From: Oikopleura dioica
Taxonomy: Eukaryota; Animalia; Chordata
Assembly (NCBI GenBank): GCA_907165135.1
Contig: OU015570.1
Location: 248,001 to 312,000, forward strand
DNA: 64,000 nt
Reading direction: 5' to 3'
Shown: one piece after another, positions 7,350 to 58,828 of the stretch
Layout: every line of letters starts with the position of its first letter
Position numbering within the stretch: position 1 is the first letter of the stretch
Notes under the pieces: generated by a model
Database searches by the model: none
Told to the model about the DNA's origin: nothing
The model's input: the letters and a program-made list of their open reading frames with translations, nothing else
Position numbers and translations under genes: made by a program

Positions 7350-7775
7350 TAACGACGGCACTGAAAATGTAACGTATGTAACGAATGTAACGAAAACAAC
7401 AAAAACATGTCTTCTTCTCGTTACATTTTCAGTAAAATTCTAGAGATTTTTTGTTTTTCTTATTTCACCCCCTTGAGTTTCCTACCATTTCACCCGCGGA
7501 GCGGGCGTTTTCACTGGATTTATCTCTAAGAGACAAACTAAATCAGATAATAAACCTTTTTTAATACTACTGTGGACTTTTTTTTTTTATTTATATGCTC
7601 TTTTAGGGGTGTTCTAATGTCATTTGAAATAATACTCCAGAATATCGCTTTTTGGAAAAAGTTTCTAGAATCAGCTGATTAACAACAACATGTCTCTGTC
7701 TTCGTTACATTTTCAGTAAATTCGTTACATTCGTTACATCCGTTACATTCGTAACATTTTCAGTGGCGACCGTTA
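7350..7775. mobile_element. MITE with CTGAAAATG + 9-bp (ATGTAACGA) subterminal repeats
   Basis: TIRs TAACGACGGCACTGAAAATG / CATTTTCAGTGGCGACCGTTA. Empty site in the inverted paralog near 13840; another copy at about 14907-15674. Confidence 0.75.
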
Positions 7776-12873: not shown

Positions 12874-13022
12874 ACCATCTTGGGTGATTTTGCATTTTTG
12901 CCTACTTTGCGGCCTCATTATTACTCAACCCTTTTATAATTTATTTTGGAAAAAGGGTCAAAATGCTTGTTGTTGTATTCGACTAAATGCGAAAAAGATC
13001 CCAATTATAATAGCAAACAACC

Positions 13023-13094
13023 GGTGAGATGGTGTAATGGTTAACACACCGCGCTACGTAGCTAGAGTCCTAGGTTCGATTCCTAGTCTTAACA
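13023..13094 (+). tRNA. tRNA-like cloverleaf in 5' LTR (non-decoding)
   Basis: D stem GTGT/ACAC; T arm CTAGG-TTCGATT-CCTAG; acceptor 6/7 paired; anticodon stem unpaired. Confidence 0.7.
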
Positions 13095-13424
13095 AAACAT
13101 TTTCATTCTTGTTGTGACGGGACCACAACAAATTGGTGGTAGCAATGGCAGGGTTGTCTGAGGCAGGGACACCCTGAGAACCATAAAAGCAAGTACAGTG
13201 TGGATTCAAAGGCAGGCGGGTAAAACTAGCGAAATTGGCAAAAAGCATGCCAAGCCCAAAAGCAGAGTGAAATAAAATCCTTAGAAAGGTAATGTCAACG
13301 CTAGGACACGGCCATAAGGTGAACCACACGCGGAAAGCATAGCATACCCAGAATAATTGGCATCTTGGGGGATGTTGTATTCGACTAAATGCGACAAAGA
13401 TCCCAATTATAATAGCAAACAACC

Positions 13425-13496
13425 GGTGAGATGGTGTAATGGTTAACACACCGCGCTACGTAGCTAGAGTCCTAGGTTCGATTCCTAGTCTTACCA
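13425..13496 (+). tRNA. tRNA-like cloverleaf in 3' LTR (non-decoding)
   Basis: 72 nt; 7/7 acceptor GGTGAGA/TCTTACC with discriminator A; perfect D and T arms; A and B boxes; TTTT at 13502-13505. Only 2 of 5 anticodon-stem pairs form. Confidence 0.78.
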
Positions 13497-14097
13497 AAAC
13501 ATTTTCATTCTTGTTGTGACGGGACCACAACATTGTTTATTACAGTTGTTTCACATATCTAATTTTGAGAATCATACGAGCATTATTTCGGGTAGCTATT
13601 TTTTGAGCGTGGACCCTACTTATATCCTGTCATAATGAGGGGATTAGTACAGTAACTCGGTGTGAAGCCGGTGTCGCGCAGCGTCGAGCGCGCCTATTCA
13701 GCCAAAATCATGCAGATTCCCCACCGCGCGAAGGGGGCTTCCTGATAAATCCCCTGATTACGATCTTATACAAATAAAAATCGAAGACAACGCGAACTTG
13801 GACCTGGTCAAAATTGAATGCGCTTTTTGATGAGGGTATATATAACTTCGAGTGACAAGTATTTTAGGAGCTGATTCCTTTTGAAGTTGAGCGTCACTTT
13901 TTCTCTCTCCTGAATTTAAAAATTATGATATGAAAAAAATCTCCAATTCAAATTGGAGAACAAAGAGGAGAAAAATTAAGACTAGATCTGATATTTTCAT
14001 GAAATTTGATGAAGGTAAGAAAAAGTTCTGCGCTCCTGAAAAGCGGCGCGAGCTCGCTTCGGGTGGTCCCTTAATCAACCAGGACTGTGTATTTAAT

Positions 14098-14900: not shown

Positions 14901-15126
14901 AAGAAAAACGACGGTACTGAAAATGTGACGAAAACAACAAAAACATGTCTTTTTCTCGTTACATTTTCAATAAAATTCTAGAGATTTTTTGTTTTACTTA
15001 TTTCACCCCTTGAGTTTCCTACCATTTCACCCGCGGAGCGGGTGTATTCACTGGATTTATCTCTAAGAAACAAACTTAATCAGAAAATAAACCTTTTTAA
15101 ATCCTATTGTGTACTTTTTTTACTTA

Positions 15127-15512
15127 CAGTTGGTTTCCTAATTTCCGGACTAATTTTGTCCCCTGGTTTCCAAAAAAATGTCCGGAAATTTGGGTCACCG
15201 GAAAAAGTTTTATGTCCCACCAAGTATTCTTAATAAAGCATTGCTACAGGGTCAATACAAAGAGATTATGAAAGAAAAACCACTTAATGACCTTAAGTTT
15301 TTACTCTTCTTCTTCAACCTCGCGAACAAGCTCAGCTTGCGCCCAAAAAGAAGTTAATTTAATCGTAAATTGATTCCTTTTTTAGAGAAAATAATCGCTA
15401 ATTAATACAACTTTGAAAAAAAGTCCGGAAATTTGGACAATGGTCGATTTTGTAGTGTCCCACTAAGATGCCTTAAAATCTGAAAAATGTCCGGAAATTT
15501 GGAAACCAACTG
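15127..15512. mobile_element. Tc1/mariner-type MITE nested in the 14907-15674 MITE
   Basis: TA-CAGTTGGTTTCC...GGAAACCAACTG-TA; absent from the paralog at about 7590. Confidence 0.85.
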
Positions 15513-15712
15513 TATTTGCCCTTTTACAGATGTTCTCACGTCGTATGAAATTTTTCATCTAAATATCGCTTTTTCGAAAAAGTTTCTAGAACCAGCTGAT
15601 GAACAACAACATGTCTCTGTTTTCGTTACATTTTCAGTGAACTCGTTACATTCGTTACATTTTCAGTGGCGACCAAGAAAAACGATAATTGAAAGTCATA
15701 TCTATTTGATAA

Positions 15713-42574: not shown

Positions 42575-43785
42575 TATATAAAGGGGTTATCCATTTTAAA
42601 AGGCCCCAACTTAAAAGGGACTTTTGCGTAAATTTGGCAGATTTTGTCATCCTAAAATTCCAACTTAAGGCTGAAACCCTTGTTTTGGCATCTTCAAAAA
42701 CCCGACTTCCAAAACGGAAAGACCTTAATTCGTCAAACTCGTCAGACTCGTCATACTCGTCAGACTCGTCAAACTCGTCAGACTTGTTTTGATTTAAAAA
42801 TTATTTTGATTGCAATAAAGCAAAACTTCGATCCCTAGTTTCTAGAGAAAATATCAATATCAGCATCAAAAAATCAACACTGTCACAAAATTATCATAAC
42901 CTGAATTCGTCAAACTCGGCAGACTGGTCAAACGGTATGACTAGGCTTTACGGACTAAAATTTGGCCATTTTTTCTAGCTTAATAAGGGGGTTAGATTTT
43001 CAGGGTTTCAATACCTGAAATACATTAAGGATGTTCCAAGGAACAAAAAAATGTATTACAGCAAAATCATCAAGTCACGTGATCGGTGATAACACTGATA
43101 CGGCCTAATTCTTCGGCTTGAAGGCCGAAGGATTGATGCGTGTAAGAACACTGATTTTTCGGCGAAAACCGAAGAATAAGTGATAAAAAATGCACTGATT
43201 CTTCGGCTAAGGAAAATTTATCCACAGATTCCTCTGCCCCTTACCACGGGGCGCCGCCCCTTTGATCCTTAAATGCCGGGGTCTAGTCTATGGTTACTAA
43301 GGGTTACCTTTGGTAACCCTAACTAACCCTAGCCTATTCCCCTCGGGTAAGTTTGTTCTGTCATTTTGCCCAGTGCCCCCTAACCCTAACCTCAAATTAT
43401 ACAAAGTACTTATTGCTAAAAATGAGTTTTTCTCTAGAAAATGTCTTCGTTGCATAAGTAAGTGCATAAGTTGCGGTAAGTTATGACTCATAGATTTCAA
43501 TTAGCAAAAGATTTTTGATAATGGATTCTAGAAAATTTGCCGAAGAATCGCTATCAATTTAATAATTAATCCTTCGGTTCAAGGGAATTCTCAATATGGC
43601 GAAGAATCAGTGTTATTGAAAGCATCAATTCTTCGGTCTTGCCGAAGAATCAACCCATAGCACGACGTGATCGCGCTCAAATTTGCCCTGAAAGTGCTGA
43701 AAATGGGCCATTTTTAGTTTTCACGTGATTTGGCCACCTACGAGACTCACTATTATTAAAAATTATATATTTATAAAAAGAGTTC

Positions 43786-46785: not shown

Positions 46786-49033
46786 GGCTAGGGTGGTCAA
46801 TTAGGCCCAAAGCAAGGCTCATAAACTCTGGACTTGTGAATGCCAGAGTACCCCATAAATTACTCGGGTATCATCTTTCACCATGCCGAGTTTCAACAAG
46901 ATAGGATTCATAGGGAAAAAGTTGATTTTTTGTAAATTCACCCTACCCATAATAGCTTTTAAGGATATACCCGATAAAATTGAACTTTTATATCGCCGAA
47001 ATGCTACGTAGGATCATTTATACAGTTTTTATGGAATTTGTGGACATCAAATTTGTGTACATTTTTAGGGAAAGCCCTTGTAATGTAGCGAATGTCCCCA
47101 ATGTCCCGAATGTCCCCGATTTTTTACTTTTTTGGTCTTTTGAAAAAAATTTATCACATGGAAAAACAGAAATTTTTCAAAACAATTTTGTTCTAGAGAC
47201 GAGTTTTTGCCAAATTCTATGAGTTTTCTACCACAAATTGCGCGGAGCGCTACCTTATTTTTGACTTTTTGTCAAAACAATGGCGTTCTAGAGAGAAAAA
47301 GCTGTTGTTGAGTTCTTGTTTTCCAGTGTTTTTGTAAGAATTGACGGGGACATTCGGAACATTCGGGACATTCGGGACATTCGGGGACATTCGGGACATT
47401 CGGGGACATTCGGGGACATTCGCTACATAGTCAGTGTCTACCTTTTTTAGATTTTAAGGGGTTTTCTTGGGACACATGAAAAAGAGAGGGTATCAAATGT
47501 GTGGACATTTTTATCAATAAAAATCTTGCAAAGAGCTGTTTTTCGTCAGAAATATTAATTTTTTAAAGATTTACGTCTCAAGCTTCCTTCTTGTGTTCTT
47601 TTTCTTATTATTTTTTGAAAAAATCATCAATTTTTCCTTCTCAAAAAATAATTTAAGCAAGATTGTTAGGGAATTTTTTCGGGGCTCTGTATCAAATTTG
47701 TGGACATTTTTCAGAAAACTAGGGGACAAAAAATGTCCACAAATTCCATAAATAACTGTATTTCAAAAGCAATTCTACGTTAACATGTACGTTGAACTCA
47801 AATCTGGTACTTCTTTACATTTTCTTATTTGAATTTTTCTCTTTAGAGCGATTTCAAATCTTACTCTCTCGATTACTCGAAATTTTTGTATAAATCGGGC
47901 GAGATTTTTAGATGGATGAGTTCTTTGGACCCTTATCTACAATTTTGATGGTTTACTTTTCGTTAATTCCGAAGGAGACCGATTCTAGAGCCATTTCACT
48001 GAGGGCTACTCAACGCGTAAAAGCTCTACAAAGCGGCGCGCTGGGAGCTCACTCACTCGACTCCTCTTTTCCGAGAGAAAGTCCGTGGTTGAGCGCACCG
48101 CCCTGATTGGTAGTACGCGGAAAAACGCGCAGAGAAGAAAAACAAAGGTATGAAAGAAGAGAACACTAGAATGAAAATTCGATCGAGTTTAAGAATTTGA
48201 TCCCATCACTTTTGTGGCTTAGCATCATTGCAATACAGAATACGGTTCAATTTTAGCGATTAAGTGGAAAAATTTCGAGAAATCGAGAGAGTTCGTTTTC
48301 AAATCGCTCTAGAGAGGAAAATTCTAACGAAAATTTCTAAAAAGTACAAGAATTTAATTAAACGCACAATTTTAAGTAAGATTGCTTTTGAAATAAAAAT
48401 GATCCGTATTTAGGCGCTATGAAAGTTCAATTTTATCGGGTATATCCTTAATAAAGATCTTTCTTAGATCTTCTGAATTACAGAAGCTAATTCCGTAATC
48501 CCAAGGAAAAAGCCACTTCCGGCGGCTTCAAATTTGGCATCGCGGCTAAAATCGCGAAAATAGCCCATCTTCAGGGGTCCAAAACTCCAAAGTTTACACA
48601 ATGGTCCTATCAACTCTAACTCTTTTTAGGTTTCCTAGACCGTAATCTCAAAATTTACAGAATTTTTTTATTTGATAACTTTTTCTTAAAAATTTTTTCA
48701 ATAAACCAAGGTACCTATATTTGACTATTCATTCCTATAAATTGCCCTTCGGGCAAAGCCCAGACGCCCTCAGCCCTACCCTTAATGAATGTGCTGAATG
48801 TAAGCTTTCTAAAAATGAATCATGTGAAGCTATTGTTAAGGGTAAAAATTTCATAATATTGGGTTCACTTTCAAAATATACTTATTTTCTGCACTTTTAG
48901 TCGCAATTTCCCGGAGATCGAGTTGAGATAGCGAAAAAGTGAATGCGGAGTTTTTTGCTCAAAATTTCCTGAGGAATCCAAAAATGCGGGTCAAAAAGAA
49001 TCTCAGACTTGCTCAAAATCGACCACCCTAGCC
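46786..49033. mobile_element. Kolobok-type (TTAA, GG..CC) non-autonomous element with nested MITEs
   Basis: TTAA-GGCTAGGGTGGTC...GACCACCCTAGCC-TTAA. Confidence 0.75.
47069..47442. mobile_element. MITE with ATGTCCC(C)GA repeats nested in Tc1-type MITE copy C
   Basis: Absent from the paralog at 57889; flanks ATTTTTAG / TTTTTTAG; inner TIR ATGTAGCGAATGTCCCC. Confidence 0.8.
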
Positions 49034-51330: not shown

Positions 51331-52655
51331 GTAAGTTTGTTCCGTCATTTTTGCTGGTGCACCCTAACCCAAACCTTTATTTTAACAAATACTACGATTT
51401 TAATTTATAACTATCGGGTTCCACCATTTTTCCTAAATAAAGCCCGAAAAATGATCTTCTTCTACAGTGGGTTGCGCAGGTACTGCACCCCCAAAGAGCG
51501 GGTAGAGGGTGCAGCAGTCACGCAATCACTTTGAGCAAGTCTAGAAAGAAACAATAGAAAAAGTGCGGGCGAAGGGTGCAGCAACGCCGCAATCACAAAG
51601 GGTGCATTACCTGCGCAACCCACTCTCATATGAGAACATAAAATTACTCGAGATTTTTGAGGTGAAAACTCATCAGAAGCCAAACTCATTCAATGCACAT
51701 ACTAGGGCTCATCAGGATGAGAATGGCGAAACCTGCCGAAACATTATTGCTCAAAAGACATTAAATTCTGATTTTTGTTTCGGCTCGTACCGAAATATTT
51801 TTCCTAAAAACGTGTCTTATTTGTAAGATTCTTTCGGCTGCCTGCCGAAATATTTATTACATTTGACCCCTTGAAAGTGATTTATATTTCGGTCGCTTTT
51901 ACCGAAACATTTTTCTATACTACGGTTCATTCATTCCTCAAAATTTAATTCCACTGCAAAGATGGCAGGAAACGGGAAAAAAATTCACATTTCCTTGGCA
52001 GAGAAGAAAAAATATGGGCAGATTCTAGTGAAGGCGCCAAAACGAAAAGATGGTAGGAAGACTGTGATGGAGCTTTATCGAAAGAAGAATGATGGAGGAA
52101 GATCTGATCGAGCATTTCCTGGCGCTTCAAATTGATGAAACACAAGCCGCGACCCCGAGGGAGATTGAAGAAGAGCCTCAAGTTCAAGTGACAGAGAGCA
52201 CCGACACTGCAAACCTTTGACTTCGAAATGTCCAGAAAAGCAGTCAAAGATTACAGATATTTTTAATAAATGATTCACTGTGAGTCTAAAAATTTTTTGA
52301 CTTTGAATAAAAATCTTGAAAACGGTCTTAAGTTGGAATTTTGCAGATGACATCATTTTCACAATATACGCAAAAACGCTCTTAAGTCGGGCGCTCTTAA
52401 GATGGAAAACCACGGTATTCGAGCAAAAGTCTAGAAAATCGTGCGTTTTCGGGAAACACTGACGCCGGCCGCCCCCGGCCGCCCTGACTGACGCTGGCCG
52501 GTCCATCTTTTAAAAATTTTTTAATTAATTTTATCAATGTTAAATGAATTTTTATTGTATAAAAACATATTTTTAGGGTTATCTTACCAAAGTTTGACCA
52601 TTACCTCCTCGCTTAAAAATCGCACGATTTTTTATAGCCCGATTTTCAGGGTTTT

Positions 52656-52823
52656 TGAGGAGCGATCTTGTCAGTCGCTCGCTCGGAATATCTCGCCCAA
52701 AAGGCCGATTGTGATCACTGTGAAGTAGTGTAGTGGTAACACATCCCAACCGCGGGGCGGAAATCTCTGGTTCGATCCCAGACTTCATCTAATCCTTTTT
52801 CGCCCATAGTCTCAAACCTTACA
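52656..52823 (+). mobile_element. Solo-LTR-like insert (TG..CA, 168 bp) containing a tRNA-like cloverleaf
   Basis: Absent from the paralog near 43000 (GATTTTCAGGGTTT|CAATACCTG); GTTT duplicated on both sides. Confidence 0.65.
52719..52790 (+). tRNA. tRNA-like cloverleaf (Val-like D arm), anticodon arm broken
   Basis: TAGTGTAGTGGTAACAC D arm; TCTGG-TTCGATC-CCAGA T arm; 6/7 acceptor pairs; TTTTT at 52796-52800. Confidence 0.7.
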
Positions 52824-53789
52824 GTTTCAATACCTGGAATACATTAAGGATGTTCCAAGGAACAAAAAATGTATTACAGCAGAATCATCAAGTCACGTGA
52901 TCGTGCTCAAATTTGCCCTGAAAGTGCTGAAAATGGGCCATTTTCAGTTTTCACGTGATTTGGCCACCTACGAGGCTCACTATTATTAAAAATTATATAT
53001 TTATAGAAAGACGGCAAAATTCTCTTTCGATTGATAAGGGTTTCATTCTTGCAAAATAATATCTCAACCCTTTTTCGAGGGTTGAAGTCATTGAAAAGTG
53101 GTATTTTTCGACTTTTTCTAATAATTCTTCTTAATTATTTTTAAAACTTTAAAAACCATAATAAAGCCTAAAACTATGATAATTTCGATTTTTTAAAAAA
53201 TAGGTGTGGGTGGGGTTGGGGAAAAAGCTGAGATTAATCGACTCAGAGTGCCTACGCCTTTGTCAAGCTCCTTAAAAATCAAGGAACGGGGCTGAGACGG
53301 CCCGAAGGCATCAAACCAGCTAGTAAATGGCGGTGTACCGCGGTAAAATGAGTTTCAGCTTGGAAAGAGATCGTTGAGAAACACAGTTGCTTAATTATCT
53401 GGCAATCTTTAAATTTTATTTATTAAATTTGAAAAACACTGGTTTTCAGTATGCTCAACCCTCAAAAAAGGGATGAGATATCATTTTGCAAAAACAAGAC
53501 CTTTTTATTCGTAAGAGAATTTTATGCACTTTCAAATCATACAAAAAAATTTCTAAAAATGAATCTCGTAGGTGGCGAAATCACGTGATTTATGAAATTG
53601 GCCATTTTTCGCCATTTTGAGGGCATTTTCAACCCTTTTGGGGAGGAGCTACGATAGAGTCTAATTGACAAAAATATTCCCCGAAGTTCACTCTATAAGA
53701 ATAGAAGGTGAAAACCGGCAATATCGGAGGTTTTTTAATCGGAGGAATTTTTAAGCAAGGAGCCTATGAGACATAATATTTGGGCATTT

Positions 53790-57397: not shown

Positions 57398-58828
57398 AAG
57401 TCTCTTACATAAATGTCTTATATTTACGCAAAAAGAAGATCCAAAAATGATTTATGACATTCAATCTCAACTTCATGCTTGGTTATAATTAGGGACTATC
57501 ACTTCTCGTTAGACGAGATTTTTGGGCGTCGGGGACTCGCAGTAGCAAAGCTTATTGGTACTGGGAGTACCAATTTCGGCTTTTCGAATGATATTTTAAT
57601 AAGATTTTTCAGTCGGAACAATAGTAGGCGGGTAAATACCGTGATTATCATTTCTGAGTGACTATTCTTGTCCGCCTACGCTCGTCATTTTAATATTTTC
57701 GCATGGGAAAAATGTTATAACGAAAAATTGTCAATGTTAATTGACGGAGCGAAGGCGGACATAGTAGTCATCTAGAAATGATAATCGCGTTAGAAGAGTA
57801 GCCTGTCCGAATCATTAAGTTTCTTACCACAGAACCTGCGGAGCGGGCGTTCCTGGATGATTAAAAGTTTGCTTTGCCAGAATTGGTACAGTTTTTATGG
57901 AATTTGTGGACATCAAATTTGTGGACATTTTTAGATTTTGAGGGGTTTTCTTGGGACACATGAAAAAGAGAGGGTATCAAATTTGTGGACATTTTTGTCA
58001 ATAAAAATCTTGCAAAGAGCTGTTTTTCGTCAGAAATATTAATTTTTTAAAGATTTACGTCTCAAGCTTCCTTCTTGTGTTCTTTTTCTTATTATTTTTT
58101 GAAAAAATCATCAATTTTTCCTTCTCAAAAAATAATTTAAGCAAGATTGTTAGGGAATTTTTTCGGGGCTCTGTATCAAATTTGTGGACATTTTTCAGAA
58201 AACTAGGGGACAAAAAATGTCCACAAATTCCATAAATAACTGTACTTGGAGTAACAAATTGGTACTGGCAGATAAACAACCAGAAGCTCCTCCCGGCTAT
58301 ACAGAATCAGAATCATCAGCAGCTTATACTCTTCAACAGCTGATCAATCATAACTTCCATTAAAAAGAAGGAAAGATGTTTATTAGTGTTACGATCTTGC
58401 GAGCGCTCTTCCTTGCAAAAACAGGCGCTGAGCCCATTTCTCACTCGTAGCTATTTTCAAACGATCTTCTATCTTACCGACGCGACAGAATCTTCCAACT
58501 GCACCAAATACACGAAGCTAAAAATATATAAGTCACTAAAAACGTTAAAAATCTCATCCGCACGAAGTAAAACAGAATATAAAGACTCTGCTCTTAGTTC
58601 AAAACACTCTTCTATTTTTCGTCTCGCGTCACAAATATACTCATACTATTACAAACAAACCCGTCTAGAGATTTTCTGCATTTATCGTGATCATAACTCT
58701 AACAGATTCTTCCGGCATCCTTCGTGTGCGTGTATTTTAGGTTTTTTCGGCGAATGAAATTGCCCGTTTAACGTGTTACTTTCTTTAGAATTGTCGAAAC
58801 AGACAAGATTCTTATTAATCTTATGAAG

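Follow-up and report, generated by a model that had tools for sequence, protein, structure and literature searches.

The stretch of Oikopleura dioica DNA analysed here (positions 248,001 to 312,000 of contig OU015570.1, assembly GCA_907165135.1; 64,000 nucleotides, hereafter the window) carries a short insert with a tRNA-like sequence inside it, and this locus raises two questions: what kind of element the insert belongs to, and what its tRNA-like part is for. Our answer to the first is that the insert is very probably a solo LTR of a protein-less Helenus-type TRIM family, here called F2, in which each LTR contains a tRNA-like Pol III unit. As to the second, the element may supply its own primer for reverse transcription; we put forward this proposal, to which we give an even chance, because of the complementarity and covariation described below.

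The insert comprises 169 nt and is missing from a paralogous repeat copy elsewhere in the window (Table 1). At the filled site the junctions read cagg-GTTT-insert-GTTT-caatacc, and at the empty paralog cagg-GTTT-caatacc. The 3′ flank (52824-52903) is 96% identical to the paralog (43005-43085), and the 5′ flank resembles it over about 30 nt only, with an indel. The original prediction had described a 168-bp insertion starting at 52656, judged against an empty paralog near 43000, with GTTT duplicated on either side. The insertion itself stands and the filled and empty junctions confirm the duplication, while the length has to be changed to 169 nt and the start to 52655. Likewise, the predicted layout of 63 nt, tRNA and 33 nt becomes 64/72/33 nt for the 5′ part, the tRNA-like part and the 3′ part, so that only the first figure changes. 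Of the predicted TG...CA ends the CA holds, whereas the solo copy begins T-TGAGG and thus lacks one G, the second base, of the TGTGAGG that opens the full-copy LTR.

Table 1. The F2 insert, its parts, its empty counterpart and a comparison element, in window coordinates.
Feature	Position	Strand	Evidence
TSD GTTT, 5′ copy	52651..52654	+	single GTTT in empty paralog, doubled around insert
Solo LTR, 169 nt, very probably of Helenus-type TRIM family F2	52655..52823	+	97-99% identity to both full-copy LTRs; all-LTR alignment
U3-like LTR 5′ part, 64 nt	52655..52718	+	69% identity between subfamilies A and B; 70-nt relative (84%) at G000:C2:11687124
tRNA-like Pol III unit	52719..52790	+	A box in D arm, B box GGTTCGATCCC; Rfam; fold
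T5 run, Pol III terminator-like	52796..52800	+	TTTTT, 5 nt past tRNA-like 3′ end
U5-like LTR end, ...CCTTACA	52801..52823	+	same end adjoins PBS region in full copy
TSD GTTT, 3′ copy	52824..52827	+	junction comparison with empty paralog
Empty target site, paralogous repeat copy	43005..43008	+	single GTTT; flank alignment
Full Helenus-type element F1, comparison element	12971..13532	+	PBS TGGTGGTA fits own tRNA-like 3′ end; TSD TTGT

The paralog has an insert of its own (43086-43664, about 580 bp) that does not occur in the 52.9-kb copy. Its inverted ends are rich in ...GAAGAAT.../...ATTCTTC..., a telomere-like stretch of CCCTAA lies inside it, and it probably represents a further small transposon of the non-autonomous kind.

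Elsewhere in the 64.28-Mb genome, sequence like the insert occurs in two more copies (99% and 97% identity, E 1e-74 to 1e-79), and this recurrence shows that the match is not due to chance. Both copies lie in direct orientation, 612 bp apart (G000:C3:1578219-1578386 and 1578831-1578995), as the LTRs (167 and 170 nt) of a full F2 element of 779 bp (G000:C3:1578217-1578995). The search for paired direct copies with a primer-binding site (PBS), which had been suggested as a check, was therefore successful. The full element consists of an LTR (TGTGAGG...CCTTACA), AAT, a block TGGAGATGACAGAGGTCAACG, a core of about 440 nt, the PPT TTTGGGGGA and the second LTR. Its PBS, TGGAGATGA, starts 3 nt past the 5′ LTR (...TTACA, AAT, PBS), and the G-rich PPT (GGGGGA) directly adjoins the TGTGAGG of the 3′ LTR. 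The TA microsatellite around the element would agree with a TATA duplication, and target site duplications are 4 bp long throughout: GTTT in the window, TATA at the full F2 copy, GCTA in two metagenome contigs (L090/L091), GTAC in a family called F3 and TTGT in F1. F2 is represented in the assembly by one full copy and one solo LTR only. All copies of F1 and F2 and several copies of F3 lie on the 2.9-Mb piece C3, which includes the window and which probably corresponds to the Y-specific, repeat-rich region of the Okinawa assembly. Apart from these copies, a stretch of 70 nt on another piece (G000:C2:11687124-11687193; L004:1491-1570) is 84% identical to the U3-like part of F2. Lacking a tRNA-like part, it passes into unrelated sequence and may represent either a tRNA-less relative or the origin of this LTR segment.

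No relative of the F2 core was found elsewhere in the genome or in phage records, so that an autonomous partner was not found. The longest ORF of the core has no Pfam match, there is no ATG-started ORF of more than 47 aa on the element strand, and the reading frame is not kept between F2 subfamilies because of indels. Copying and integration would have to be provided in trans by the reverse transcriptase and integrase of an LTR retrotransposon; the 4-bp duplications and TG..CA ends make a Ty3/gypsy element of the Tor type the likely partner. F2 has been mobile, as shown by the empty site, the 4-bp duplications and polymorphic metagenome copies. A diverged F2 subfamily is present in contigs of one marine metagenome sample, in which L089 contains a full F2-type copy with a truncated 5′ end, and a single LTR insertion with GCTA on either side is apparently split between L090 and L091. 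Both the PBS and the PPT are kept in this subfamily. Identity between subfamilies A and B is 69% in the U3-like part and 73% in the core, and rises to 88% in the post-tRNA part and 93% in the tRNA-like part; the PBS block is identical in 21 of 21 nt. Moreover, all five changes in the tRNA-like part are in the anticodon arm and none in the other 55 nt.

This kind of element is already known. Kojima (2024) described Helenus as TRIMs with a tRNA-like sequence in their LTRs, a PBS, a PPT and, in animals, 4-bp duplications (PMC10886601), and F2 has the same structure: it is short, has two LTRs with a tRNA-like part, no coding capacity, PBS and PPT, and 4-bp duplications. The original prediction of a class of tRNA-bearing LTRs that comprises several families was thus correct, but this class has been published as Helenus/TRIMp3 (PMC10886601). 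The Oikopleura elements share with it the short, protein-less organization with A/B-box tRNA-derived sequence in each LTR, as well as solo LTRs, tandem arrays and the occurrence of several families in one genome. The hosts listed there do not include tunicates, and the words Oikopleura, tunicate and Ciona are absent from the text (PMC10886601). Two features set the Oikopleura families apart. First, a run of four to five T follows right after the tRNA-like part. Second, animal Helenus use host tRNAs, with PBS matches including Lys, Leu and His (PMC10886601), whereas the PBS in Oikopleura fits the 3′ end of the element's own tRNA-like sequence with CCA added.

The tRNA-like unit of the solo LTR matches positions 1-71 of the Rfam tRNA model RF00005 with 36.7 bits (gathering score 29), and that in the 3′ LTR of the full copy with 45.6 bits. 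ARAGORN, which as a control calls every genuine host tRNA fetched, makes no tRNA call on the window unit. Acceptor, D and T arms are present, and the anticodon arm has 3 bp and a 12-nt loop. The 72-nt cloverleaf followed by TTTTT, the Val-like D arm and the broken anticodon arm that had been predicted are all borne out, the D arm being identical to host tRNA-Val(AAC/CAC) genes over 13 nt. In contrast, neither the acceptor stem nor the discriminator is related to tRNA-Val, and BLAST with the whole unit found no similar host tRNA. The 5-bp anticodon stem, 7-nt loop and consistent identity of a functional tRNA gene are absent. In the 3′ LTR of the full copy all 7 bp of the acceptor stem are paired (GGTGAAG with CTTCATC, discriminator T); a G1>T change weakens this stem in the solo copy. 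MFE folding z-scores of the unit are not significant, which is usual for tRNAs.

The PBS of F2 is a perfect complement, over 9 nt, of the element's own tRNA-like 3′ end plus CCA. The sequence TGG-A-GATGAAG had been predicted for it: the nine contiguous matches were found as expected, and the site then continues as TGGAGATGA-C-AG, so that 11 Watson-Crick pairs form only if one C is bulged. The conserved block after the 9 nt has no continuous complement to the tRNA-like RNA. A bipartite PBS, in which CAGAGG would pair with the T-stem, is a chance event of about 5% and is not claimed here. Among 16 sampled host tRNAs, at most 5 nt pair with the F2 PBS, compared with 9 for the tRNA-like RNA. Only 63 of 3446 candidates of a genome-wide Rfam tRNA search were scored, covering few isotypes, and the host tRNA set was therefore probed by 3′-end pattern. 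Genome scans for a canonical T-loop followed by ...TCATCT or ...CATCT at tRNA spacing returned no canonical host tRNA; the hits were the three LTRs of F2 and sequences which neither ARAGORN nor Rfam takes as tRNA. The end of host tRNA-Ala(UGC), CATCTCCA, matches 8 nt of the PBS, but its added CCA would be left unpaired, which makes it unsuitable for priming. Complementarity of the PBS to a host tRNA, a reported, non-defining property of Helenus, was thus not found for F2 among the sampled tRNAs and the patterns scanned.

Several other candidates were discarded. When other elements with the 15-nt F2 PBS were sought, the only exact match proved to be F2 itself. The many sites with one or two mismatches (TGGAGATGAAAGAGG/C), arranged as inverted pairs with a spacing of about 500 bp, are the arms of an unrelated palindromic repeat and none is accompanied by a tRNA; GTTCGAGCCCTCCGTTCATCT (two copies), a candidate primer tRNA, sits in non-tRNA sequence; and G000:C2:11003792, retrieved with a junction pattern (B box followed by CAAATTGG), had no Rfam tRNA match and was dropped. 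The palindromic repeat is MITE-like, about 500 bp long, and is found at G000:C3:2034298-2034821 (L008:990-1515) and in more than 20 other places. Its inverted arms carry TGGAGATGAAAGAGG/C and are the source of most PBS near-matches; it contains no tRNA.

The same relation between PBS and tRNA-like end recurs in two further families. In F1, the acceptor 3′ strand TCTTACC with discriminator A faces the PBS TGGTGGTA with 8 contiguous pairs; a second, overlapping reading, TGGTAGCA, would presumably fit the 3′ end of the initiator tRNA. In F3 (read at G000:C3:9507-10047), the acceptor 3′ strand CTTCTTC with discriminator A faces TGGTGAAGA with 9 contiguous pairs, and the PBS core is followed by C-AG as in F2. 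F3 has roughly 30 copies; at least 13 full ones are nearly identical, and solo LTRs as well as a tandem array also occur. A genome pattern scan for canonical tRNA ends ...CTTCA found them all within F3 LTRs and in no host tRNA. Common to the families are CAG.GG... just past the variable PBS core and a PPT TTGGGGGA followed by TGT. As F2 and F3 have homologous LTRs (58% identity), they can be compared position by position: acceptor positions 3 (T/A) and 70 (A/T) change jointly with PBS position 7 (T/A), and discriminator 73 (T/A) shifts with PBS position 4 (A/T). In comparison with F1, positions 71, 70 and 69 shift with PBS positions 6, 7 and 8. Compensating changes are therefore seen at at least five positions across the three families.

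Further copies of these families also occur. Four F3 LTRs in one orientation, spaced by about 365 bp, form an array of the type LTR-core-LTR-core at G000:C1:2724497-2725618; Cassandra and other TRIMs are known to form such tandem arrays. In a third LTR fragment of the F1 type (G000:C3:1449080-1449230; L119:380-530), the tRNA-like part scores 33.1 bits, has two broken acceptor pairs and is followed by TTTTT. Neither a partner LTR nor a recognisable PBS was found for this fragment, which is adjoined by a MITE (about 330 bp) whose inverted ends read GGGCGCCCAGGTTCACAA.

What the complementarity means depends on how a second reading is weighed, to which we assign somewhat less than an even chance. 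According to this reading, the insert is a Helenus solo LTR as well, but the tRNA-like unit is only a Pol III promoter or structural module, as in the TRIMp3 model, and a host RNA primes. That the PBS fits the element's own end would then be a by-product, either of a U5-PBS stem in the genomic RNA or of ancestral inheritance. In line with this, Kojima, who covered more than 200 Helenus families, found none with a PBS complementary to the tRNA-like sequence of its own LTR (PMC10886601, section 3.6). Furthermore, only 9 nt pair in F2, three of them being the universal TGG, and 5-6 bp are encoded once the CCA is disregarded. Sense-strand runs of at least four T occur, in the four elements examined, only 5 nt downstream of the tRNA-like parts, and their absence from the rest of the element would fit Pol III read-through, although by shuffling the lack of TTTT from the cores did not reach significance. 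However, in F1, F2 and F3 alike the complementarity begins at the base right after TGG, that is, with the discriminator, which is predicted by a CCA-tailed primer and not by a stem within the genomic RNA. The compensating changes across families and the outcome of the pattern scans, which yielded no canonical host tRNA fitting F2 or F3, also argue against a by-product. Moreover, the A and B boxes sit in the D and T arms, so that a promoter role alone fails to explain why both acceptor strands are invariant between subfamilies. The reading in which the unit serves as primer, in which PBS and acceptor stem co-evolve family by family and the PBS fits no host tRNA, in our view stands at even chances.

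If the unit is a primer, the following course of events can be envisaged. With its A and B boxes, a paired 7-bp acceptor stem and a run of four to five T 5 nt downstream, the LTR unit would act as a self-contained Pol III gene, whose transcript would end at the T-run. RNase P and RNase Z would trim the tRNA-like transcript and CCA would be added; the tRNA-like mascRNA is processed in this way by RNase P, RNase Z and CCA addition in spite of a poor anticodon arm. The CCA-tailed 3′ end could then anneal to the PBS of the genomic RNA of its own family and serve as a private primer for minus-strand synthesis by a reverse transcriptase supplied, together with the integrase, by Tor. Read-through of the weak T-run may also yield the genomic RNA, which would end at the same run in the 3′ LTR.

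Much less probable is that the insert is a copy of a tRNA-derived SINE (SINE2) moved by a LINE, a possibility we regard as very remote. Such SINEs share with F2 the small size and a tRNA-like Pol III part that contains A and B boxes and is followed by a T-run, and Kojima indeed proposed that Helenus arose when a tRNA-derived SINE inserted into an LTR (PMC10886601). In F2, however, 64 nt precede the tRNA-like part and the LTR has TG..CA ends. Variable target site duplications and tails, which had been named as the marks of a SINE, were not observed: the duplications are fixed at 4 bp, and there is no A-rich or simple-repeat tail. Furthermore, the F2 LTRs occur as a pair with PBS and PPT, and LINEs are reported to be almost absent from the Okinawa Oikopleura dioica assembly OKI2018_I69 (PMC8008620). 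Finally, the D arm and the missing ARAGORN call might suggest a pseudogene left by decay of a host tRNA-Val gene, or a cloverleaf that arose by chance in an unrelated repeat. Both are next to impossible, as the entire 169-nt unit recurs as the LTRs of a structured element and its acceptor stem is unrelated to Val yet fully paired in the full copy.

The window contains other repeats that resemble LTR elements. A 320-nt direct repeat (47444-47763 and 57928-58247; 98.75% identity, 10.5 kb apart) spans the solo LTR. Its second copy is followed by ...GTAACA, AAT and TGGTACTGGCAG, in the style of the junction of LTR end, AAT and TGG in the Helenus families; no ORF of at least 150 aa was found downstream of either copy. 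The apparent LTR pairs at 7.4 and 14.9 kb (7360-7770 and 14920-15670) are MITE-like copies with inverted ends cactgaaaatgtaacg...cgttacattttcagtg and not LTRs, the second one with a further insert of about 390 bp.

Among known systems, the plant TRIM Cassandra is similar in that each LTR contains a Pol III module with promoter and terminator, whose 5S RNA is described, in a passage of the Helenus paper, as independently transcribed (PMC10886601). Cassandra differs in that this module is a 5S rRNA sequence, not tRNA-like, and in its occurrence in plants. The Cassandra 5S RNA is not known to act as a primer. In Tf1/sushi-type elements, the primer is reportedly the first 11 nt of the genomic RNA, which fold back and are cut by RNase H (work by Levin from 1995-96). 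As proposed here for the Oikopleura elements, an RNA encoded by the element replaces the host tRNA as primer. However, Tf1 uses its own 5′ end, whereas in Oikopleura the primer would be a separate, tRNA-like Pol III transcript which needs CCA. In text searches of the literature, no account was found of a tRNA-like primer encoded by an LTR.

Taken as a solo LTR, the insert is nothing unusual; with it, Helenus gains a tunicate host and a second low-copy family. For genome annotation it is relevant that these LTR units pass the Rfam tRNA threshold. ARAGORN calls F3 LTR units tRNA-His with anticodon ATG (L129:222-293, L129:595-667, L130-L132), and about 30 F3 copies called tRNA-His(AUG) can inflate tRNA counts. 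According to the textbook view, LTR retroelements borrow a tRNA of the host or, as Tf1 does, fold back their own 5′ end. If the proposal made here is true, F2 would belong to the first LTR retroelements found with a dedicated tRNA-like primer of their own encoding. This could free such an element from the host tRNA supply and from host small RNAs directed against tRNA-type primer-binding sites. Moreover, if confirmed, the hitherto unexplained tRNA-like module of Helenus would gain a function, and these elements of Oikopleura would represent a parasite of a parasite that brings its own primer, in a small and experimentally tractable system.
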